Source of the DNA: Scyliorhinus canicula
Taxonomy: Eukaryota
Length of the DNA: 64,000 nt
Assembly (NCBI RefSeq): GCF_902713615.1
Contig: NW_024055467.1
Span: 62,001-126,000 of the forward strand
Reading direction: 5' to 3'
Shown here: positions 1,826 through 62,057 of the stretch, piece by piece
Layout: every line of letters starts with the position of its first letter
Numbering within the stretch: position 1 is the stretch's first letter
The notes under the pieces: generated by a model
What the model saw: the letters and a program-made list of their open reading frames with translations, nothing else
Told to the model about the DNA's origin: nothing
The model's database searches: none
Made by a program: the position numbers and the translations under genes

Positions 1826-1844
1826 CTGCAGGAGTTGGGTGTTG

Positions 1845-2190
1845 GGTAACACGGTAGCCTTGTGGATAGCACAATTGCTTCACAGCTCCAGGGTCCCAGG
1901 TTCGATTCCGGCTTGGGTCACTGTCTGTGTGGAGTCTGCACGTCCTCCCCGTGTGTGTGTGAGTTTTCTCCGGGTGCTCCGGTTTCTTCCCACAGTCCAA
2001 AGATGTGCAGGTTAGGTGGATTGGCCATGATAAATTGTCCTTAGTGTCCAAAATTGCCCTTAGTGTTGGGTGGGGTTACTGGGTTATGGGGATAAGGTGG
2101 AGGTGTTGACCTTGGGTAGGGTGCTCTTTCCAAGAGCCGGTGCAGACTCGATGGGCTGAATGGCCTTCTTCTGCACTGTAAATTATATCT
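1845..2190 (+). mobile_element. HE1-type V-SINE with CR1-type tail
   Basis: tRNA-derived head with B box GGTTCGATTCC, central GTCTGTGTGGAGTCTGCACGT domain and GACTCGATGGGCTGAATGGCCT tail. Confidence 0.9.
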
Positions 2191-2269
2191 TTGATAATCA
2201 CATCCTTTGTTTATTTCTGTTCAAGTTAATAACCCCTATAAGTGGGCTGGAGTTTGATGTTGTCCACAG

Positions 2270-2420
2270 GACAGGTGATGTGCCGGGATTGCAGTATGTG
2301 GGAGTTTTTGGAGAACATTGCCATCCTGGACAATCATATCTGCGGGAGTGTCTGTAACTTGCAGAATCTGGGCTCAGGGTTATTGAGCTGGAGTCTGAGC
2401 TGCTGACATTGTGGGGCATC
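2270..2420 (+). mobile_element. CR1 ORF1 zinc-finger fragment
   Basis: Reads VMCRDCSMWE...IC...L.LRVIELESEL, typical of the CR1 ORF1 N-terminus. Confidence 0.55.
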
Positions 2421-2470
2421 AAGGGGGGGGGGGGGGGGAAGTCACCTGTACACTTCCCCAAAGTTCAGTA

Positions 2471-2639
2471 GAAAGTTGCAGTGGGTGGGGGACTCGATTT
2501 TCTGCAACATTCGACAGTTTGAAATGTGTGGGGATAAGTGAGGAATGATCAGTGAGCTCCGGCTGTCTGACAGCTCGATGTATTACTGCAGGCTCAGAGA
2601 CTCAGTGACAGGAACCAGAGGGAACCTCATACAAAAACA
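2471..2639 (+). pseudogene. Antigen-receptor (TCR alpha/delta-like) V-segment 3' fragment with 23-RSS
   Basis: GTRFSATFDSLK, then a frameshift, then MISELRLSDSSMYYCRLR. Followed by heptamer CTCAGTG (2601-2607), an exactly 23-bp spacer and nonamer ACAAAAACA (2631-2639). Confidence 0.8.
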
Positions 2640-2928
2640 CTGTTGCAGTGGGACATGATGAATGGAGCAGTGGGCTGTGGCGGAAGTTATGTGGAGTTCT
2701 AGCATTTAACAGACAATAACGTCCCGACAATGTGTCCACAGACAGCTCTCATCAGCTCTGAAGAGAGAAGTCAGATTTCATGCCCTTATATTTTTCTGCT
2801 CTATTTGATATGCCACTGATAGAGGATAACCAGAACAAATCTTACCCTTTTTATGTCCCCAGTGGAAGATTAATCAGAACCCACCCCGTCACCAAGCTCA
2901 GTCTAATTCATGACAGTGAGTGAAATAT

Positions 2929-3238
2929 GGGCAGCACGGTAGCACAGTGGTAAGCACTGTTGCTTCACAGCGCCAGGGACCCGGGTTCGATTCCAGGCTT
3001 GGTCACTGTCTGTGCGGAGTCTGCACGTTCTCCCCGTGTCGTTGTGGGTTTCCTCCGGGTGCTCCGGTTTCCTCCCACAAGTTCCGAAATACTTCCTTAC
3101 TCGGTGATTTAAACATTCTGAATTCTCCCTCAGTCTACCTGAACTGGCATCAGAGTGTGGCAACTAGGTGCTTTTCACAGTAAATTCATCGCAGTGTTAA
3201 TATAAGCCTACTTGTAACACTAATAAAGATTATTATTA
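2929..3238 (+). mobile_element. SINE, HE1-like head with Rex1/Babar-like tail
   Basis: GGGCAGCACGGTAGCACAGTGG head; tail CTTTTCACAGTAA...AAGCCTACTTGTAACACTAATAAAGATTATTATT. Confidence 0.85.
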
Positions 3239-3267: not shown

Positions 3268-3450
3268 AGGTTGTTTAGCATAGGGCTAAATCGCTGGCTT
3301 TGAAAGCAGACCAAGGCAGGCCAGCAGCACGGTTCAATTCCCGCAACAGCCTCCCCGAACAGGTGCCGGAATGCGGCGACTAGGGGCGTTTCACAGTAAC
3401 TTCATTTGAAGCCTACTTGTGACAATAAGCAATTTTCAATTTCAATTTTC
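3268..3450 (+). mobile_element. Short (~180 bp) tRNA-derived SINE
   Basis: Near-identical copies at 47030-47211 (-) and 49305-49480 (+); B box GGTTCAATTCC; GTGACAATAAG-(TTTCA)n tail. Confidence 0.8.
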
Positions 3451-4214: not shown

Positions 4215-4294
4215 ATGGCTGCGGGGGCGGCGCTCGCCAACCGCGCGCGCTGGCATAAGTGGACCCTCGAGCTCAACCCGAGCGGCAGCAGCAG
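4215..4294 (+). CDS. EMC4: EMC4 exon 1
   Basis: MAAGAALANRARWHKWTLELNPSGSS(R); donor AG/GTGCAG. Confidence 0.85.
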
Positions 4295-4952
4295 GTGCAG
4301 AGGCCGCGCGGGGAGCCTGGGGCTCGAGTAGGTCGGGCCAGCCTGCCTCACCCGCGGGGAGGGCACCGCACACTGACCCAGGGATGTGGGCACCAACCTA
4401 AAACTTTACACCCCACGGTTTTCCAGGATCCTTTCACCCCTCACTTGGCCCCTTGGCAGAAAGCAGCTTTTCAAATCTCCTAGAAACCACTCCGACCCCA
4501 CTTGACTTATTTTCCCGGGGTCACGACCCTGAGACACCATCTTGGTTTCAGCCCCCCCACCTGATCGGGTGCCAACTGCGGTGTTGGCTGGAGGAATGAT
4601 TGCTGGTTTCTAGGGCCGGGTGCTGCACTGGCTCTCTCGACATTCAACATCGTTCACTTTCAAGCTAAAATTTAGTTCCTCCGGTGATTCGGTGTGATCG
4701 CCATTTGACAGAGGACTGGACAAGGGGATTGGCACCCTGATTGTCAGTTGACTCCAACCACTTTTGTGGCCGTCCATTACCATGGCAGTTTTGTGGATGC
4801 AGTGGTACTGTGTGCTCTTGGCTTGCTCATGGTTTAGTTCATGCTGGCAGTATTGCCACCATGGTGGGGTCCCTGATGGAGAGACTCCCTCTTTAAAGAG
4901 AGTCCTGAAAGGGTTGCTGAGGTGACCAATTTGTGTTCTCTGTTTCTCGCAG

Positions 4953-5064
4953 GAGCTGTGATAAACAGAATGGTCAGGCTGACTTCATGTGCCCAGTCGC
5001 ATATTCAGACAAACAGCTTCCAGACATCCGCGTCCAAGAAACAAACCGGATCGTGGTTGAGAAA
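4953..5064 (+). CDS. EMC4: EMC4 exon 2
   Basis: Acceptor TTTCTCGCAG; SCDKQNGQADFMCPVAYSDKQLPDIRVQETNRIVVEK; donor GTAAGT. Confidence 0.93.
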
Positions 5065-5269
5065 GTAAGTTGGATTTGAATGTGTCCTCGGTGTCCAGCT
5101 AGCCAGGCTAGGTTTGTCAACAGTGGTTAACTAGGTTGGTGAACCGCTGCACCCTATGTGCTAAAGGGACCTTTTGTGATGTTAACCGTCATCCTTATTT
5201 CCAGGCCTGGGTGTGACCTTCCCCAACCTGGCTCCCTTTACTGATGCTCTGCTTGCTTTCTGTTTTCAG

Positions 5270-5423
5270 TTCTGCTGGGACATCGCCTTGGCTCCATTGA
5301 AGCAGCTGCCCATGAATCTGTTCATTATGTACACGGCTGGCAACAACATCTCCATCTTCCCTATCATGATGGTTTGCATGATGGCCTGGAGACCCATACA
5401 GGCACTGATGTCCATGTCGGCAA
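5270..5423 (+). CDS. EMC4: EMC4 exon 3
   Basis: Acceptor TGTTTTCAG; [18 protein letters not shown]...QALMSMSA; donor GTGAGT. Confidence 0.95.
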
Positions 5424-5754
5424 GTGAGTATTGTATTGATTCTGCAGCTGCGAAACCGCTCTGAACTGGCATCATTTGAATGGGATTTAGAATAGAGTGC
5501 TGAGAGCTCAGTGAATGAGGGAGTTCGGGAAGGACGGGAAAGAGGAGCTCTTTTACTTTCCAGATTTCTTGGCCTTCAAGAAGTGGTCTTACTCTGCTAC
5601 AGGAGAAGAAGTTAGTTTGTTAGTGAGTAACTGCCAAGTGACATGGGGTTATTCTATTTCTATGGCTCAAAATACTGTAGCAACTGGTTGTAAGGTTGAT
5701 AAAATATATAAAAACAAAAGTAAAACATATTAGGGGTGGCACGGTAGGTTTATA

Positions 5755-5956
5755 CCTCCAATGTACGGATATCCCCCTGGGAGAGAGAGGGGACAGAGAC
5801 ACCAGTCACTGTACAGATATCCACCTGAGAGAGAGGGGACAGAGACACCAGTCAGTGTACAGATATCCCCCTGAGAGACACCAGTGAGTGTACAGATATC
5901 TCCCTGGGGGAGAGAGGGGACAGAGACACCAGTCACTGTACAGATATCTCCCTGAG
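5755..5956. repeat. Minisatellite, ~46-48 bp unit, ~4-5 copies, in EMC4 intron 3
   Basis: Repeated TGTACAGATATCYCCCTG(AG)nGGGACAGAGACACCAGTCA. Confidence 0.85.
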
Positions 5957-5959
5957 ATT

Positions 5960-6830
5960 TCTCTTGGTGTCCAACAATCCATTGATATCAGTTTGGAATA
6001 TAATCAGTGATTGAACATCCACAACTCATGGGGTGAGGAAATTCCACTTCAGCTCAGTCCGAACTGGCTGCCCCTGATCCTGAGGCTGTGTCTCTGTGTT
6101 CCGGATTCTGCAGCCAGAGGAAACAGTGTCTCCACATCTCCCTGTCAAACCCTATTTACAATTATATCTGCTTCAATCGGATCAACTCTCAGTCTCGGAA
6201 ACCCAAGAGAGTAAAGGCCCATTCTTCCCAATCTCTCCTCGTTGGACAATCCTGTCATCCCAGGAACCAATCTGGTGAACCTTTGTTACCCTCCCTCCTG
6301 GGCAATTCTGTAGATAAGGAGACCCAAACTGCATAAGTTTTTCCTGCTGTGTTTGACCAAAGCTGCAATTTGTACAATTGCAGAAAGATTTCCTCACTCA
6401 AACTCCAGCGAATCATAGAAACCCTATAGTGCAGAAGGAGGCCATTCGGCCCATCGAGTCTGCACCAACCATTTGAAAGGCCACCATACAGAGACCCAAT
6501 TCCCCCCCTATCCCTGTAACCCCACCTGACCTTTGGACACTTGAGGGGCAATTTAGCATGGCCAATCTACCAAACCTGTACATTTTTGGACTGTGGGAGG
6601 AACCCGGAGGAAACCCACGCAGACACTGGGTGAACGTGCAGACTCTGCACTGGCAGTCAGCCGAAGCTGTAATCAAACCCGGGTCCCTGGCGCCATCCCT
6701 CGGTGAAGGCTAACGGAATACCTGCCGTCCCAATTTCTTGCTGTATCTCCATGCTGACTGTTTGTGATTCGAGTACAAAGATCCCCCAATCCTCTGTGAA
6801 CATTTCAATCTCTCTCCTGTTCCTGATCTT
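5960..6830 (-). mobile_element. Degenerate CR1 3' region with a nested HE1 SINE (6412-6700, -)
   Basis: Antisense CR1 ORF2-end sequence interrupted by an HE1 copy. Confidence 0.65.
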
Positions 6831-6856
6831 TCTGTTTTTCCCATTCTCACTCCCAG

Positions 6857-7017
6857 TCTTTAAGGTCCTGGGGAATTCGACTCAGCACTGGCTGCAGTGT
6901 CTGCTCTACTTCATCGGCAACCTGCTGGGGTTGGCCCTGGCCGTCTACAAGTGCCAGGTGATGGGGTTGCTGCCCACACACTCCTCCGACTGGCTGGCAT
7001 TCCTCCGGCCGCCCCAG
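6857..7017 (+). CDS. EMC4: EMC4 exon 4
   Basis: Acceptor CTCCCAG; [13 protein letters not shown]...[10 protein letters not shown]; donor GTAAGA. Confidence 0.95.
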
Positions 7018-7129
7018 GTAAGATCTGAACTCGGAACGTGAGGGGAGTTAGGAAAATAGGAAGAGAAGGAGACCGTTCAGCGCTCTGGAGCCTGAGCGAC
7101 GGGTCCAACGTTCCCTGGAGTTTAGATCA

Positions 7130-7490
7130 TCCGATTGAAAGGTGTGAAATTCTGAGGAGACTCCGTAAGGTCGATGTGGAGAGGCTAAATCCCGGAGAGT
7201 CGGGGACACGGGGCCACAGTCTCGATAAGGGGGCGGCCATTTTGGACTGTGACGAGGGAGAATTTCTTCACCCAGAGGGTTTGTGAATCTTTGGAATTCT
7301 CTATCCCAGGGAATCCTGGATGTTCGGTCGTTGAGTGTGTTCAAGGCTGAGGTGGAGATATCTTTGAGAATTGTGGGGCGGGGAGGAGTGCGGGGAGAGT
7401 GGAGCTGAGGTCGATGATGAGCTGTAATCTTGTTGAATAGTGGAGCAGGCTCGCCAGGAGCTATTCCCACTCCTATTCCTGATGTTCCTC
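7130..7490 (+). mobile_element. Old CR1 3' end filling EMC4 intron 4
   Basis: CR1 ORF2-end motifs (GTRGHSL..., NFFTQR..NLWNSL) and the TTGAAT.G.GGAGCAGGCTCG tail. Confidence 0.7.
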
Positions 7491-7501
7491 TCCTTTCACA
7501 G

Positions 7502-7537
7502 AGAGTGGAGTACATGGGCGGGGGGCTGGTCCTGTGA
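7502..7537 (+). CDS. EMC4: EMC4 exon 5 (terminal)
   Basis: Acceptor CCTTTCACAG; RVEYMGGGLVL-stop, matching the vertebrate EMC4 C-terminus. Confidence 0.93.
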   Translation, partial: RVEYMGGGLVL

Positions 7538-13631: not shown

Positions 13632-14669
13632 TTACCTGTGAAGTTGCTGGTGTAGCAGCAGGTTGGCTGACTGTGTGAATCCCTTCCCACACTCTGGGCA
13701 AGTGAATGGTCTTTCCCCAGTGTGAATGCGCCGATGTGTCACCAGATGGGATGATTGACTGAATCCTTTCTCACACTCAGAGCAGGTGAATGGCCTCTCC
13801 CCAGTGTGAACTCGCTGGTGTGTCAGTAGGTGGGATGACCGAGTGAATCCCTTCCCACACTGGGAGCAGGTGAACGGCCTCTCTCCACTGTGGATGCGCT
13901 GATGTTCCAGCAGGGTGGATAACCGAGTAAATCCCTTCCCACACTCAGAGCAGTTGAAGGGTCTCTCCCCAGTATGAACTCGCTGATGTACTATCAGATC
14001 AGATGATCGCCTGAACCCAGTCCCACAGTGAGAACATCTGAACGGCCTCTCCCCAGTGTGAACACGTTGATGAAACATCAGTTCCCAGGAACTTGTATAG
14101 CCCTTCTCACAGTCCTGACATTTAAAAGGTCTCTCCCCGGTGTGAATTCGCTGGTGTGTCCGCAGGTGGGATGAGTGAGCAAATCCTTTGCCACACGTGG
14201 AGCAGATGAACGGCCTCTCCCCAGTGTGAATTCGCTGGTGGACAGTGAGGACAGATAATGTCTTGAACCCAGTCCTGCAGTGAGAGCACTTGAAAGGTCT
14301 CTCATCACTGTGAACACGTCGATGACCAGTCAGTTCCCGGGAACTTTTATAGCACTTCCCACAGTCTGGACATTTAAAAGGTCTCTCGTCTGTGTGAACT
14401 TGTCGGTGTTGCAGCAAGGAGGATGAACAAGTGAATCCCTTCCCACACTCTGAGCAGGTGAACGGTCTCTCCCCACTGTGACTACGCTGATGGTTCCCCA
14501 GCTCAGATGGGTAATTAAAGCCCTTCCCACAGTCTCCACATTTCCACGGCTTCTCTCTGTGGTGACTGCAGTTATGGTTTGTCATACCAGATGACGGACT
14601 AAAGTCTTGTCCATACACAGAACATGTGTCCGGTTTCTTTTCACTGTGAACGGTGCTTTTTCCTTCCAT
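13632..14669 (-). CDS. C2H2 zinc-finger protein ZNF-B, 345 aa, 11 intact fingers plus 1 degenerate
   Basis: Open ORF with TGERPF linkers; upstream acceptor TTTCACAG (exon starts at 14746); AATAAA at 13511-13516 (-). Confidence 0.92.
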
Positions 14670-25032: not shown

Positions 25033-26380
25033 GTTTTTTGTTTTTAAAAGTAATTTTTATTCAAATTTTAACCAACAAAACAAAGAAAAACAGTAACCAG
25101 TTTGATGAACCCGGCCATGTCGTTGATCCAGGATTCCGCGCTTGGGGGCTTCACATCCTTCCACTGTAAAAGAATCTTGCGCCGGGCTACCAGGGGCGCA
25201 ATGGCCAGAATACCGGCCTCTTTCACCTCCTGTGTTCCCGGCTCCAATGCTACCCCGAAAATTGCAAGCCCCCAGCCCGGCTCCACCCTGGAGCCAACCA
25301 CCCTTGACAACGTCCCCGCAACACCCCTCCAATGCAGGACACGCCGAGAACATGTGGGTGTGGTTTGCTGGGCTCCCCAAACACCTGCCACACCTGTCCT
25401 CTCCCCCAAAGAACTGGCTCAGCCTTGTCCCAGTCATATGCGCCCTATGCAGCACCGTTAGTTGGATTAAACTAAGCCACGCGCAAGAGGAGGAGGAATT
25501 CAACCTCCCCAAAGCATCCACCCACATCCCCTCGTCAATCTCCTCTCCCAGCTCCTCCTCCCACATCTTTCAGCTCTTCCACCGAGGCCTCCTCCCCTTC
25601 CTGCATCACTTGGTAGATTGCCGAGATCCTCCCCTCTCCAACCCACGTCCCCGAGAGCACCCTGTCCTGAACCCCCCTTGGCGACAACAGTGGAAACTCC
25701 GCCACCTGCCGCCTAACAAACACCCTAATCTGCATGTACCTAAAGGAATTCCCTGGGGGTAGACCCCACCTCCCCTCCAACTCCTCTAAAGTCGCAAACT
25801 TCCCACCGAGAAGGAGGTTCCCCATCCGCCTGATACCTGCCCTGTGCCAGCTCAAAAACCCTCCATCCATCCTCCCTGGTACAAACCGGTGGCTCCCCCA
25901 TAGCGGGGACCAAATTGAAGCCTTCACCTCCCTCCTATGCCGCCTCCACTGCCCCCATCTTTTGAGGGTAGCCACCACCACCGGACTCGTAGAATACCTT
26001 GCTGGGGGGAGCGGCAGCGGCGCCGTCACCAGCGCCTCTAGGCTCGTGCCCACACAGACGCCGCCTCCAACCTCTTCCATGCCGCCCCCTCCCCCTCCAT
26101 CACCCACCTACGTATCATCCCCATGTTCGCAGCCCAGCAGTACCTACACAGGTTGGGCAGCGCCAACCCCCCCCCCCCCCCCCCCCCCCCCCCCACCCCG
26201 CTCCAGGAATACCCTCCTCACCCTCGGGGTCTTCTGCGCCCACGCAAACCCCGTAATGCTCCTCCTGACCCTCCTGAAAAAAGCCTTCGGGATCATGATA
26301 GGTAGACACTGGAAGAGGAACAGAAACCTCGTGAGCACCGTCATTTTGACCGACTGGACCCTGCCCGCTAGGGAGAGGGC
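25033..26380 (-). mobile_element. L1 LINE ORF2 C-terminal fragment with 3' tail
   Basis: LSLAGRVQSVKMTVL.RFLFLFQCLP and C..C.....NHTHMF..CP motifs; AATAAAAA/poly(A) end. Confidence 0.9.
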
Positions 26381-31941: not shown

Positions 31942-32979
31942 TTACTCGTGAAGTCGCTGGTGTCTCAGCAGGGCGGATGTGTGAGTGAATCTCTTCTTAC
32001 ACACAAAGCAGGTGAATGGCCGCTCCCCCGTGTGAACTCGCTGGTGTGTCCGCAGACTGGATAAGGTAGTGACTCTCTTCCCACACCTGGAGCAGGTGAA
32101 TGGGCCCAGCATTGTGTGAGTGCGCTGATGTGTCAGCAGGGCGGATGACTCAATGAATCCCTTCCCACACATGGTACAGGTGAATGGCCTCTCCCCAGTG
32201 TGAATGCGCTGGTGTACCAGCTGGTTAGATAAGGTAGTGAATCCTTTCCCACACAGGGAACAGGTGAATGGTTTCTCCCCAGTGTGAACTCTCTGGTGTA
32301 TAACCAGGTGGGATGACCGAGGGAATCCCTTCCCACACTCGGAGCAGGTGAATGGCCTCTCCCCAGTGTGGGTGCGCTGGTGGACAGTGAGTTGAGAGGA
32401 CCATCGGAACCCAGTCCCACAGTGAGAGCACCTGTACGGTGTCTTGTCAGTGTGAACACGTCGATGTCGCATAAATTCCCAGGAACTTTTGAAGCACTTC
32501 TCACAGTCTGAGCATTTGAAAGGTCTCTCCCCAGTGTGAGCGCGTTGGTGTATCGTGAGTTGAGATGACCATTTGAACCCAGTCCCACAGTGAGAGCACC
32601 TAAATGGTCTCTCATCAGTGTGAACACGTTGGTGGGACATCAATTCGCTGGAACCTTTAAAGCACTTCCCGCATTCTGGACACTGAAAACGTTTCTCTTC
32701 AGTGTGAATCTGCTGCTGTTTTACCAGGCTCTTTGACTTCATGAATCCCTTCGCACACACAGAACAGGTGAACGGCCTCTCTCCAGTGTGACGGCGTCGA
32801 TGGGTTTCCAACTCAGACGGGTATCTGAATCCCTTCCCACATTCCCCACATTTCCACGGTTTCTGCCTGGTCTGACTGCATTTATGTTTTGACAGTCCAG
32901 ATGATTGACTGAATCCTCGCCCACACACACAGCACGTGAACGGTTTCTCCCCACTGCGAACGATTCTTTTTCCTTCCAT
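31942..32979 (-). CDS. C2H2 zinc-finger protein ZNF-D, 345 aa from ATG (MEGKRIV), 10 intact fingers plus 2 atypical
   Basis: Open ORF; the ATG aligns with MEGK of ZNF-B; acceptor TTTCACAG (exon starts at 33076). Confidence 0.92.
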
Positions 32980-33719
32980 GTTCGAAATTGGATGATATAA
33001 AGTCACAAATTGTGTGACTGTCGGATCCTGATGCGATGTTCGATTCGAGTTTCCCAACAAATCCCCATCTCACATCCTGTGAAATTGATTTAAAACAGAA
33101 AACAGGTAGAGAGAACCCACAAAAACACAAAAGCAGGTTGTCAAATTGAGCTGAATGAACCTGGTCATTTGTGGGGCCGACACTGGGAAAAAGTGACCAT
33201 GAAAATGGCTGGATTGTCACAAAACCCCAGCTGGATCACTGATGTCCTTCAGGGAAGAGAACCTCCCACCCAGTGTGGATCTACACAAGACTCTGTCCTT
33301 TATGTCTTCAACTCAAACAGAACTTAGAATCTCCAAACTCTGAAGCTCTCCCGCCACCAAGAAAGAGCTGAGAGCTCAGCCATTTCAGACTCAGCCTCAT
33401 TGCTGTTGGTGCTTCCACATGGAGGCCAGACTGGGTAAGGATGGCAGATTTCCTTCAAGGACATTTACCAGATGGGTTTTTACAACAATCAACAATAGTT
33501 TCACGGTCGTCATTTTAAACTTTTTAAATTCCATATTTTTACTCAATTCAAATTCCACCATCTGCCTGGTGGGATTCAAACCCATTTCCCCAGAGCATTA
33601 CCCTGGGTCTCTGGATTACAGGTGCAGTGACAATACCACTACGCCAATGTGTGCCCCTTTGTGATGTACGTTAACACCATCGCCTACAAGTTCCCATCAA
33701 AATCACACACCACCCTGAC

Positions 33720-37404: not shown

Positions 37405-37935
37405 CTAAGAGCAGGTGAATGGCCTCTCCTCAGTGTGAACTCGCTGATGTCTCTGCAGGTTGGATAACTGTGTGAATCCATTCCCACAGAGGGAGCAGGT
37501 GAATGGCTTCACCCCAGTGTGAACTCGCTGATGTTTCAGTAGGGTGGATGAATCAATGAATCCTTTCACACACTGAGAGCAGGTGAATGGCCTCTCCCCA
37601 GTGTGAATTCGCTGATGTCTCCGCAGGGTGGATGAATCAATAAATCCCTTCCCACATTGAGAGCAAGTAAACGGCTTCTCCCCAGTGTGAATTCGCTGGT
37701 GTAACTGCAGGGTGGATAATCGAGTGAATCCCTTCCCACACCGAGAGCAGGTGAATGGCTTCTCCCCAGTGTGAATTCGCTGGTGTGTCTGCAGGGTGGA
37801 TGACTGAGCAAATCCCTTCTCACACTGAGAGCAGGTGAACGGTCTCTCTCCAGTGTGACTGCGGCGATGAATCTCCAGCTTAGATGGGAATCTGTATCCC
37901 TTCCCACAGTCCCCACATTTCCATGGTTTCTCCAT
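37405..37935 (-). CDS. C2H2 zinc-finger protein ZNF-C, 176 aa from MEKPW, 6 fingers
   Basis: Open ORF ending at a CAG>TAG change in a seventh finger. Confidence 0.8.
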
Positions 37936-39649
37936 GTTTTGGGTCTCCTCGTGTCTCTCCAGGTTGGACAATCAGTGGAAGCCTTGGCTACACACAGAAC
38001 ATGTGCACTGTCTCTCCTCACTGTGAATGGTGTGATGTTTTCAGGCTGTGTATCTGGTTGAAGTTCTTTCCACAGTCAGTTCACTGGAACACTCTCACTC
38101 GGGTGTGTGTTGTGTGGGTCTCGGTGCTTTTCCAGTCACACTCACATTAAAAAATTTTTGAAGCTCACAGATCGGACAAACATTTCTTCTTCTCGCCGAT
38201 GATATTCAGATCAGAAGGAATCGAGTGAGTTTGAGAAATCTGTCTATAATTCCTCCCCTTCCAATATCCTTTAAAAACAATTTACGAAAGTCATCAATTA
38301 GTACAGGATAGAAATTCAGAACAGACAATTCTAGTTTCGATGGAACTTTATTGCCTCTCTCGTTCTCCAAAAGCTGTAAATCTCCACCCCCCCCCCCCCC
38401 CCCCCCACCCCATTCTCACTCTGCTGTATCTAATATTCACCCTCCCAATTCTCCTGAAGGTGCTGATTCACGTTGATTGACAGATTCAACCTCAGCTCAC
38501 TGCTTCCTGACCAGGACACAGGGATTAAAATAGGAGTAAGAGTAGGCCATTCGGCCCACCGAGTCTGCTCAACCATTCAATGAGATCCTTGGCCGATCTA
38601 CCTCAGCACCATTTCCCACACGATCCCCTATCCCTCGATATCTTCAATATCTAGAAACCTATCAATATTTGTCTTGAACATATCTGATGACTGAGGCTCC
38701 ACATTCCTCTGGGGTAGAGAATTCCAAAGCTTCACCACATCCTCGAGTGAAGAAATCCCTCCTCACCTCAGCTTTCTCTCTATTTTCCTACCCGTTTCCC
38801 ATAACCCTTAACTCCATTGTCAATAAAATATCTGTCAAACTTGTGCTTCAATATATTCAATGACCCCCAGATACAACTGGTCCCTGTGGAAGAGAAATCC
38901 AAAGACTAACAACCCTCTGAGGGAAGAGATGACTGGAAATCTATAACGTAGCCACAGTCTTATATTACAAGGCGAGAAATAATAATAAATTTGCTTTATT
39001 ACAGAACGGTAAATAATATATCTAATCTGTACCATGTAACAACACCAGACACATCTCTGTCGATTGTTAATTTAATGTCCCCTGAAATGGCAGCCATCTC
39101 CTGGGGAACCCACCCCTTTAATTGTGAACATTAGGAAAGAAACCATCCTTTTAACCAGACAAATAAATATGTCAAGCTGAGGGGGAGACCTGGACGACAA
39201 GGGAGAACAATAAATCAGAGGTCTCTCCGATGGCAAGGAAGTGAACCCTGGCAGGTGGGCGGGGAGGATTCACAAACACCCGCTGGAGGCCCCAAACCCC
39301 CAATAAGATCCATTGATTTTGTCAGTCTGCAGACAGGAGCTGGAGAACTGAACCCAGGCAGAGGAGAGGGAGGGAGAAAACTGGGAGTGAGATGGTGAGA
39401 TGGGTTTGGATTTCAGCCCAGGGAGAAGGGAGAGTGTGTGCGACGAGGATTTACAGCTTTGGGGGAACAAGAGAGGAAAGAATGTTCCAGAGAAACTAGA
39501 ATTGCCTGTTCAGAATTTCTATCCTGGACTGACAGTGATGGCTTTTGTAAACTCCTTTTACAGGGGATTAGAATGGGAGAATTTGCACACAACAAACTGA
39601 ACCCAACAGAAAGGTTTGTCTCTTTGCGAATTCTATCCTGCATTGACAG

Positions 39650-40490: not shown

Positions 40491-41810
40491 GAGGATTTAC
40501 CAGGATATGGAAGCTGAGCTGGTGAGGAAGCGAGCGGCCTTTAATAAGGTTCAGGCTGCTCTATGTAAGAAAGGAGTTTGATTCGGGGCGGTATACCCAG
40601 CAAAGCTGCGGGTTACAAATCAGTCCAAAGACTTCCATTTCGTGATACTAGTGGAGGCGAATGCCTTTATTGTAAAGCATGGACTGAGTCTAGTTATCTG
40701 TATTGGACAAGATCTACATTCCTGTGGGGTGGGATGGGTGTTGTGATATCCTCGATATAGTTTTTGACATTTTCTGATAGAATCTATTTTTCTGTGTGGG
40801 GATGAAGAGAGATTTTCTTTACAAAGCACAACGTAGATCTGTGTGGGTGGGTGGTGGGGGGAGGGGGGGGGGGGGGGGGGGGGAGGACGGCCCCCATTGG
40901 AAATTGAGTCTAGTAAGGGACTGCATTCTGAAATATGTTTTATTCACGCAGTGGGCAATATTGTTGTTTTTATTTTCTTGTTGTCCTGAGAGGAGTTTCC
41001 CTACCAGCAGTCAGCTGGTGAATGGGAGTGAGATTGGGGGGGGGGGGGGGTGTAGCTGCAGCTGGTGAACCAGTTTTGGCTGGTTCAACAAGCTCAGCGT
41101 CAGGGCCGGAGCCGGGGGGGGGAGGGTGGTTTTGGATTCAATGTGTGTGTCTAGGTGAGGCGTTGGTGAAAACTGGGGCAGGGGGGTTAGTTTGCTGATG
41201 ATGACTATAAAACTGTTTTTGTTTTACTCTGAAGATGTGTGCGCGTGGCGGTCATCTTGGGTGGACCCTTGGCCTGTACTTTTTGAAGATTTGCTGGATA
41301 GTCCCTCACGGTGGAAATGGCTGATTCCGTGATGGGGGCTGGTGCGGAGACTCTTGATTCAGGGCTGGTCATCTGGAACGCAAGGGGATTGGGTGGACCA
41401 GTGAAGGTCAAGGGTTTTCGCTCACCTAAAGAATCAAAATGCTGGTGTGGTATCCTTGCAGGAGACTCATTTGCAGGTTAGAGATCAGACCAGACTGCGG
41501 AGGGGTGAGCCAAGTGTTTCACTCGGGCTTTGACAAAGGGTTTGAGGTGCTGCAATTCTAATCAATAAACAGATCCCTCTTTCAGTCACTAGGATCATTG
41601 CGGACGCTAATGGGAGATACGTGGTGGTCAGTGGGTCGTTGGCAGATACATTGGTGGTGCTGGTGAATGGCTAAGTCCCTAACTGGGACGATGTGGCATT
41701 TGTAAAAAAAATTGTTGGGATCCATCCCAGACCTGGATACACATCAATCAATGCTTGGCAGAGACTTCACTTGTGTACTGGATCTGGAAATGGACTGGTC
41801 CAAGCCCATT
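40488..41810 (+). mobile_element. L1 fragment: ORF1 end, spacer and ORF2 endonuclease start
   Basis: VRIYQDM...RKRAAF...YPAKLRV (ORF1); IWNARGL, LQETHL and GRYVVVSG (APE endonuclease). Confidence 0.85.
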
Positions 41811-60965: not shown

Positions 60966-62057
60966 ATATATATTTTTTTAATAAACAATTTCATTGAGGT
61001 AGTTTTTGGCTTTGTAAACAGCTACAGACATCAACAGAAAGAAAGCAAAAAAGGCAAAAATGTGCAAACATCCATGTACTTTCAATACTTCAATCGTAAC
61101 ATACTGCACAAGCCCGCTCCTCTCCCACCGGTACTACCCGCCATATTTTTCCTCCTACTCTACTCTACCCCCCCCCCCCCCCCCCCCCCCCGCTGACGCT
61201 CACTCTCCCGCAAAGAAGTCAATAAATGGTTGCCACCTCCGGGTGAACCCCTGTACAGATCCCCTCTTGGCGAACTTAAGTTTTTCCATACTCAGGAAAC
61301 TCGACATGTCCGCAAGCCACAACTCCGTCTTCGGGGGCTTTGAGTCCCTCCACGCCAATAGTATTCGTCACCAGGCTATCAGGGAAGCAAAGGCCAAAAC
61401 ATCGGCCTCTTTCTCCCCCTGAACTCCCGGGTCTTCCGAAACCCCAAAAATTGCCACCCCTGGTCTCATCACCACCCTTGTTTTTAGCACCCGGGACATG
61501 ATCCCCGCATATCCCTCCCAGTACCCCCTCAGCTTAGGGCATGCCCAAAACATGTGAACCTGGTTCGCTGGTCCTCCCGCGCACCTAGTGCATTTGTCCT
61601 CTATCCCAAAGAATTTGCTCATCCGAGCCCCCGTCACATGGTGAACGACCTTAAATTGAATCAGCCCGAGCCGAGCACATGCCGAATTTACCCTACTCAG
61701 GGCCTCTGCCCACAGCCCGTCCTCCATTTCCCCGCCTAGCTCCTCCTCCCATTTAAGTTTCAGTTCCTCTGTCTGGGACCCTTCCTCCCTCATGAGCACC
61801 TTATAAATACCCGAGACTCTACCCTCCCCTTCTTCCCCCTTAGAGATTATTCTGTCTAGGATCCCCATTGGCGGGAGGCGTGGGAAAGATGGGACCTGTC
61901 TACGAACAAAGTCCCGCAACTGTAGGTACCTAAAATAATTTCCCCTTACCAACCCAAATTTCTCCTCCAAGCTCCTCAAACTCGCAAAGCTCCCTTCCAG
62001 GAAAATATCACCCACCTTTCCCACCCCCGCCCGCCGCCATACTCGGAACCCCCCATC
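60966..62057 (-). mobile_element. 5'-truncated L1 with 13-bp TSD
   Basis: ORF2 C-terminus (CTRC....ANQVHMFWACP), G-rich 3'UTR and AATAAA/poly(A); CACCGATTAATAT at 60953-60965 and 62058-62070. Confidence 0.92.

Follow-up and report, generated by a model that had tools for sequence, protein, structure and literature searches.

The window analysed here, a 64 kb stretch of Scyliorhinus canicula DNA, carries near its start a C2H2 zinc-finger exon, a tRNA-derived SINE copy, an ORF-like fragment presumed to be a transposon piece, a run of guanines, a short V-exon remnant with an adjoining recombination signal (RSS), and an EMC4-like gene (Table 1). The zinc-finger exon ends 0.65 kb before the V remnant, and the EMC4-like gene starts about 1.6 kb after it; both flanking exons were confirmed by Pfam, in agreement with an earlier note on this DNA that had placed the segment between a ZNF gene and EMC4. 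Five C2H2 zinc-finger exons were found in the window in both orientations (1223-1825, 13632-14669, 31942-33060, 37405-37971, and 56657-57124), including inverted paralogue pairs that are up to 86% identical (37585-38031 vs 56657-57103). For the presumed transposon piece, searches of Pfam and the ESM Atlas gave no match, nor did tblastn or a motif scan, and no further copy of it was detected in the window or in the fetched loci. The CR1 identity that the earlier note had assigned to the sequence replacing the 5' half of the V segment was thus not confirmed. Homopolymer runs of G or C, 10-28 nt in length, were counted 17 times in 64 kb, compared with three A/T runs. Examples lie at 714-729, 2423-2438, 26167-26194, 40863-40883, 50356-50381, 54535-54556, and 61168-61191; several are inside transposon ORFs, where they are read as GGGGGG or PPPPPP, and two related elements (26167-26194 and 61168-61191) each have such a run in comparable ORF surroundings. 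These runs could represent a microsatellite carried by an element, or else an artefact of the assembly.

Table 1. Features at the V remnant and in its immediate neighbourhood (window coordinates).
Feature	Position	Strand	Evidence or remarks
C2H2 zinc-finger exon, 3' part (upstream neighbour)	1319-1825 (exon listed 1223-1825)	+	Pfam zf-C2H2, E 1.4e-36, six fingers
tRNA-derived shark SINE copy	1843-2190	+	Repeat families D8, D10, D15, D18, D19; many copies in window
ORF-like fragment (…MCRDCSMWEFLEN…), presumed transposon piece	2255-2422	+	ORF reading
(G)16 run at junction of upstream fragment and V remnant	2423-2438	+	Sequence reading
Possible decayed FR2 end/CDR2	2439-2477	+	Frame 3 GKSPVHFPKVQ*KV, TAG at 2469-2471; weak
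FR3 remnant of TCR alpha/delta-type V exon (class likely)	2478-2600	+	BLASTP, HMMER, alignment A1
RSS heptamer CTCAGTG	2601-2607	+	Consensus CACAGTG; position 2 A to T
RSS spacer ACAGGAACCAGAGGGAACCTCAT	2608-2630	+	23 nt, homologous to shark V-segment spacers
RSS nonamer ACAAAAACA	2631-2639	+	8/9 to consensus
EMC4-like gene (downstream neighbour)	4216-7534	+	Pfam EMC4, E 2.7e-14; tblastn with Scyliorhinus canicula EMC4-like proteins
EMC4-like exons	about 4216-4328, 4939-5073, 5267-5422, 6856-7017, 7499-7534	+	

The coding part of the relic reads as the end of a V-domain framework 3 (FR3; …RFSATFDS…LRLSDSSMYYCRLRD) divided between two frames. Three-frame translation gave GTRFSATFDSLKCVGISEE in frame 2 (2489-2548), closed by a TGA at 2546-2548, and MISELRLSDSSMYYCRLRD in frame 1 (2545-2601), as the broken frame described in the earlier note had implied. 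Near 2530-2545 the reading moves out of frame 2 into frame 1 because the window has five extra nucleotides in the middle of FR3 relative to a bamboo-shark V segment, as seen in a four-way alignment (A1). The V-set FR3 ending D-S-x-x-Y-Y/F-C is present as LRLSDSSMYYC at 2557-2589, and a six-frame scan for [DE][STA]xxY[YFL]C found a single occurrence in 64 kb, with the RSS no more than 18 nt away. Upstream of FR3, a possible decayed end of FR2 and CDR2 can be read; in one PDB alignment, the 15 aa between GKSP and RFS agree with the spacing of V domains, and a loose match to the bamboo-shark V segment is seen in A1. This FR2-ward extension gained no score in PDB or Pfam searches, and secure V homology is therefore counted from 2478, where the BLASTP alignment starts, the preceding 39 nucleotides being without statistical support. 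The leader, FR1, CDR1, and most of FR2 are absent, and a tblastn search of the window with 60 V proteins detected no V-like sequence upstream. A complete V exon with a split leader, Cys23, Trp41, and an open frame is not present; what is left is FR3 alone, with a frameshift and stops.

The RSS directly abuts the V coding end, and its heptamer is followed by a spacer of 23 nt and an A-rich nonamer, with two mismatches to CACAGTG-N23-ACAAAAACC in a pattern scan. The letters reported earlier, namely FR3-type coding sequence followed by CTCAGTG, exactly 23 bp, and a nonamer, were recovered by direct reading and by the scan, as was the replacement of CAC by CTC in the heptamer. Bamboo-shark homologues have CACAGTG or CACGGTG at this column of A1. 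The spacer is identical at 17 of 23 positions to that of the bamboo-shark locus L003, and its translation (TGTRGNLIQK) agrees with the read-through of TRAV-type segments. Previous work has indicated that mutation of CAC drastically lowers recombination, and RIC models give a score of minus infinity to any signal that does not start with CA (Cowell et al., PMC2193808), a rule that settles the RIC scoring proposed in the earlier note. The heptamer lacks the initial CAC expected of a functional 23-RSS, and since it starts with CT, the rule predicts that it would be dead as a RAG substrate. The segment as a whole can thus no longer supply a V domain, nor would RAG be able to cut and join it.

Over both strands of the 64 kb window, two 23-RSS matches with at most two mismatches were found, one of them the signal of the relic. 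The other, at 25686-25724 (AACAGTG…ACAAACACC), lies within transposon-like ORFs, has no adjoining V-type coding end, and is most likely due to chance. Because the FR3 motif occurs once in six frames and such 23-RSS matches occur twice in the window, the probability of their adjacency by chance was estimated at roughly 3e-4 or less. A SINE tail at 3392-3430 (also at about 3170-3220) mimics a weak 23-RSS with three mismatches (CACAGTAAC…23…ACAATAAGC) and is unrelated to the signal of the V relic. No 12-spacer RSS with up to three mismatches was detected in the 64 kb window. A CTCF-type module 24-25 nt past the nonamer was also considered and rejected as unsupported, as GGAGCAGTGGGCTGT at 2664-2678 agrees at only 11 of 15 positions with the consensus. 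Similarity to bamboo-shark V flanks past the nonamer was not above that of shuffled sequences.

Homology to germline V segments was found at both the protein and the DNA level. An exhaustive HMMER search of 1.84 billion representative proteins with the 37-residue ORF at 2545-2655 returned 60 proteins at E<=0.001, three of them at E<=1e-10. Nearly all of the matches are V-segment gene models, probably of TCR alpha/delta type, that read through their own RSS (e.g., …LQLSDSAVYYCALRPTVTGNTNTLYKNL), and because of this the alignments cover the coding end, heptamer, spacer, and nonamer. The top three were P0012 (GCC45228.1) and P0030 (GCC20152.1), both V-set proteins of the bamboo shark Chiloscyllium punctatum, and P0053, from a sequencing-run contig; the single-domain E-value for P0030 was 2.5e-5, and P0053 showed 70% identity over 30 aa. 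BLASTP of the relic read-through against P0030 gave 49% identity over 57 aa (E 8e-17). At the DNA level, window positions 2552-2650 are 80.8% identical to bamboo-shark L003 over 99 nt (E 1.5e-21), and positions 2555-2642 are 80.7% identical to the bamboo-shark locus L001 over 88 nt (E 2.7e-18). The homology seen in A1 spans from the RFSA codons to the nonamer, taking in the coding end and RSS together; similarity to the bamboo-shark V segments ends about 10 nt beyond the nonamer. With the read-through as a phmmer query (X at the break), all 75 PDB matches at E<10 were Ig/TCR V domains aligned at the FR3 end. The Pfam V-set match was sub-threshold (E 0.11, 13 bits vs a cut-off of 26), and on fragments it was sub-threshold or absent. 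A word-indexed protein search returned no candidate for the relic read-through (X at breaks) and only the query itself for P0030, and an exact look-up of the 37-aa ORF found no match. In our view, the HMMER and DNA homology together can be taken as decisive sequence evidence for V-segment identity.

With regard to the class of the segment, the named HMMER matches are “T-cell receptor alpha chain V region” (the frog Pelobates and the pufferfish Takifugu) and “T cell receptor alpha chain-like” (the catfish Ictalurus), and the TRAV-type end …SDSAVYYCALRPTVTG occurs in about 45 of the 60 matches. Among human and mouse PDB chains, P0030, the nearest shark V segment, which itself bears no class name, scores best to lambda-type light chains. 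The earlier note had proposed a TCR V alpha/delta segment; its identity as a V segment with a 23-RSS is upheld by the HMMER and DNA homology, while the alpha/delta class is likely, resting on the hit list and on automatic names. The nearest relatives of the relic lie in Chiloscyllium punctatum, at L001 9962-10342 (P0030) and L003 87-553 (P0012). Counting P0030, the L001 locus has at least three V segments within 10 kb, and a typical TRAV signature (ITLNCSYS…, …LSDTAVSFCALEPT) marks one of them, so that the relatives of the relic are part of a V array. The P0030 and P0012 segments have Phe in place of Cys23 and Val or Leu in place of Trp41, with open frames and good RSSs kept; they may belong to a V subfamily that lacks the canonical disulfide, or they may be young pseudogene duplicates.

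The downstream neighbour belongs to an unusual family. EMC4 is a housekeeping subunit of the ER-membrane complex, and in carcharhiniform sharks a multicopy “EMC4-like” family was observed. The best matches of the EMC4 gene in the window are proteins named “ER membrane protein complex subunit 4-like”, distributed over at least 5 scaffolds of 159 kb to 4.9 Mb in Scyliorhinus canicula. In S. torazame a single 330.8 Mb chromosome holds at least 12 such genes, and in Mustelus asterias they occur on at least 15 contigs, while each of the other vertebrate species in the hit list has one protein named EMC4. Gene models near other EMC4-like copies show a similar arrangement, with a ZNF gene followed by the EMC4-like gene, and the two appear to have been co-amplified. 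Since EMC4-like genes are multicopy on many scaffolds, the region of the window is segmentally duplicated, which favours, without proving, a duplication origin of the V relic, one of the two origins put forward in the earlier note. The multicopy EMC4 of carcharhiniform sharks is a more unusual fact than the relic itself.

The most probable reading, to which we assign a probability of about 0.85, is that positions 2478-2639 (possibly from 2439) represent the 3' end of an unrearranged germline V segment of TCR alpha/delta type, comprising FR3 and its own 23-RSS, and that this piece is now a dead relic. The scan for flanking V, J, and C segments that the earlier note had suggested turned up no further element within 64 kb, tblastn with 60 V proteins returning the relic site alone. 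Because no other antigen-receptor element is present in the window, the relic can be designated a V orphon or solitary V pseudogene, “orphan” status being judged on 64 kb of context. Objects of this kind are well known. A piece of a V array would have been copied to the site, or left there, at the DNA level, and the stranded piece would afterwards have decayed neutrally. Its 5' half could have been lost by deletion or by insertion at the (G)16 junction, and the relic may then have travelled with the duplicated ZNF/EMC4-like region. Other routes were considered. Retroposition of a germline V transcript, or formation of a chimera through LINE activity, is not supported, as neither a poly(A) nor a target-site duplication was seen on reading 2640-2927. 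A RAG-cleavage product is excluded because the coding end and the signal remain joined, and RAG-mediated insertion is ruled out on the same ground.

The V+RSS piece might instead form part of a repeated unit, either an amplified ZNF/EMC4-like segment with many near-identical relics or a transposon that captured the end of a V segment. The multicopy state of EMC4-like genes in S. canicula, S. torazame, and Mustelus asterias and the shared ZNF-then-EMC4-like layout would fit this explanation, and one of the nearest bamboo-shark relatives is on an 886-nt contig, as is typical of repeats. However, no second copy of the piece was found in the 64 kb window, even though paralogous ZNF exons are present there, including the one at 56657-57124, which is related to the upstream ZNF; the bamboo-shark homology stops about 10 nt past the nonamer, as would be expected for a gene segment and not for a longer mobile unit; and no hallmarks of a transposable element bracket the piece. 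We thus hold a repeated unit to be unlikely.

Somewhat harder to sustain is the idea that the relic is no orphon but an outlying, decayed V segment, the ZNF/EMC4-like region belonging to the shark antigen-receptor complex of TCR alpha/delta and IgH clusters or forming its margin. In favour of this, TCR alpha/delta-type V exons have been described scattered between the IgH clusters in the catshark complex (Flajnik et al. 2025, PMC12227049). In addition, the accession of catshark UrIg2 (XP_038644097.1) falls numerically between those of the EMC4-like proteins XP_038644033.1 (4.93 Mb scaffold) and XP_038644199.1 (917 kb scaffold), so that UrIg2 and EMC4-like genes may share a scaffold or lie on neighbouring ones. 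Against this, accession order is a weak hint, the 64 kb contain no other V, J, C, or 12-RSS, and the neighbours of the relic are housekeeping and ZNF genes, and we regard this setting as improbable.

The probability of a chance resemblance, in which a YYC-containing ORF would happen to lie beside a fortuitous RSS-like string, is negligible. The shortness of the pieces, the sub-threshold Pfam V-set match, and a common SINE tail in the window that mimics a 23-RSS (3392-3430) would speak for it, but this explanation can be considered refuted by the DNA identity of 81% to shark V segments (E 1e-21), which extends over the coding end, heptamer, spacer, and nonamer, by single-domain HMMER E-values down to 1e-5 in a library of 1.84 billion proteins, and by the BLASTP match to P0030 (GCC20152.1; E 8e-17).

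Under this designation the relic is without function, and its value lies in annotation and in evolutionary history. In annotation, the appropriate label is V pseudogene or orphon, and the relic should be excluded from the count of the germline repertoire. It would indicate that in sharks, as in mammals, V segments can be left behind together with their signals at sites beyond the functioning V arrays, and it provides a marker for tracing the formation of the duplicated ZNF/EMC4-like region. A more speculative extension, which we consider doubtful, is that the TCR alpha/delta-IgH complex, or its immediate neighbourhood, was where the ZNF/EMC4-like amplicon of catsharks and houndsharks took its origin, and that the amplicon carried the V+RSS stub with it. 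If so, copies of the stub would be expected upstream of many EMC4-like paralogues, where they could serve to date and order the amplification, and dozens of former RSSs would have been spread into the promoters of ordinary genes.

Comparison with known systems places the relic closest to the germline TRAV/TRDV segments of cartilaginous and bony fishes, such as GCC45228.1, GCC20152.1, and the teleost “TCR alpha chain V region” models. It shares with them the FR3 motif RFSA…L(Q/R)LSDS(A/S)xYYCxLR, a heptamer in equal codon phase, a 23-nt spacer starting with ACAGGAA, and an A-rich nonamer, and over the FR3 end and RSS it is 81% identical in DNA to bamboo-shark V segments. However, unlike fish TRAV/TRDV, it lacks a leader, FR1, CDR1, and an intact FR2, contains a frameshift and stops, has CTC and not CAC in the heptamer, and is found outside any V array within 64 kb. 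The “orphon” is a structure type recognised by IMGT (PMC13113880), and a described example is opossum TRMV-OR2, a leaderless V+RSS orphon among LINE-like sequences (PMC2275272). The relic resembles such orphons in that a V and its RSS stand without another V, J, or C element, here within 64 kb, and in being non-functional, leaderless, and among retroelement-like sequences; in contrast, TRMV-OR2 is an entire V exon that arose by recent duplication and shares 95-96% identity with functional genes (PMC2275272), whereas the relic is truncated and decayed. Its heptamer-23-nonamer string lies outside a working gene segment, as do cryptic RSSs and the mimics in SINE tails. Unlike these mimics, the signal of the relic is joined directly to a V coding end and is homologous, spacer included, to the signals of genuine V segments and, judged by this homology, it is a formerly physiological RSS and not a fortuitous one.
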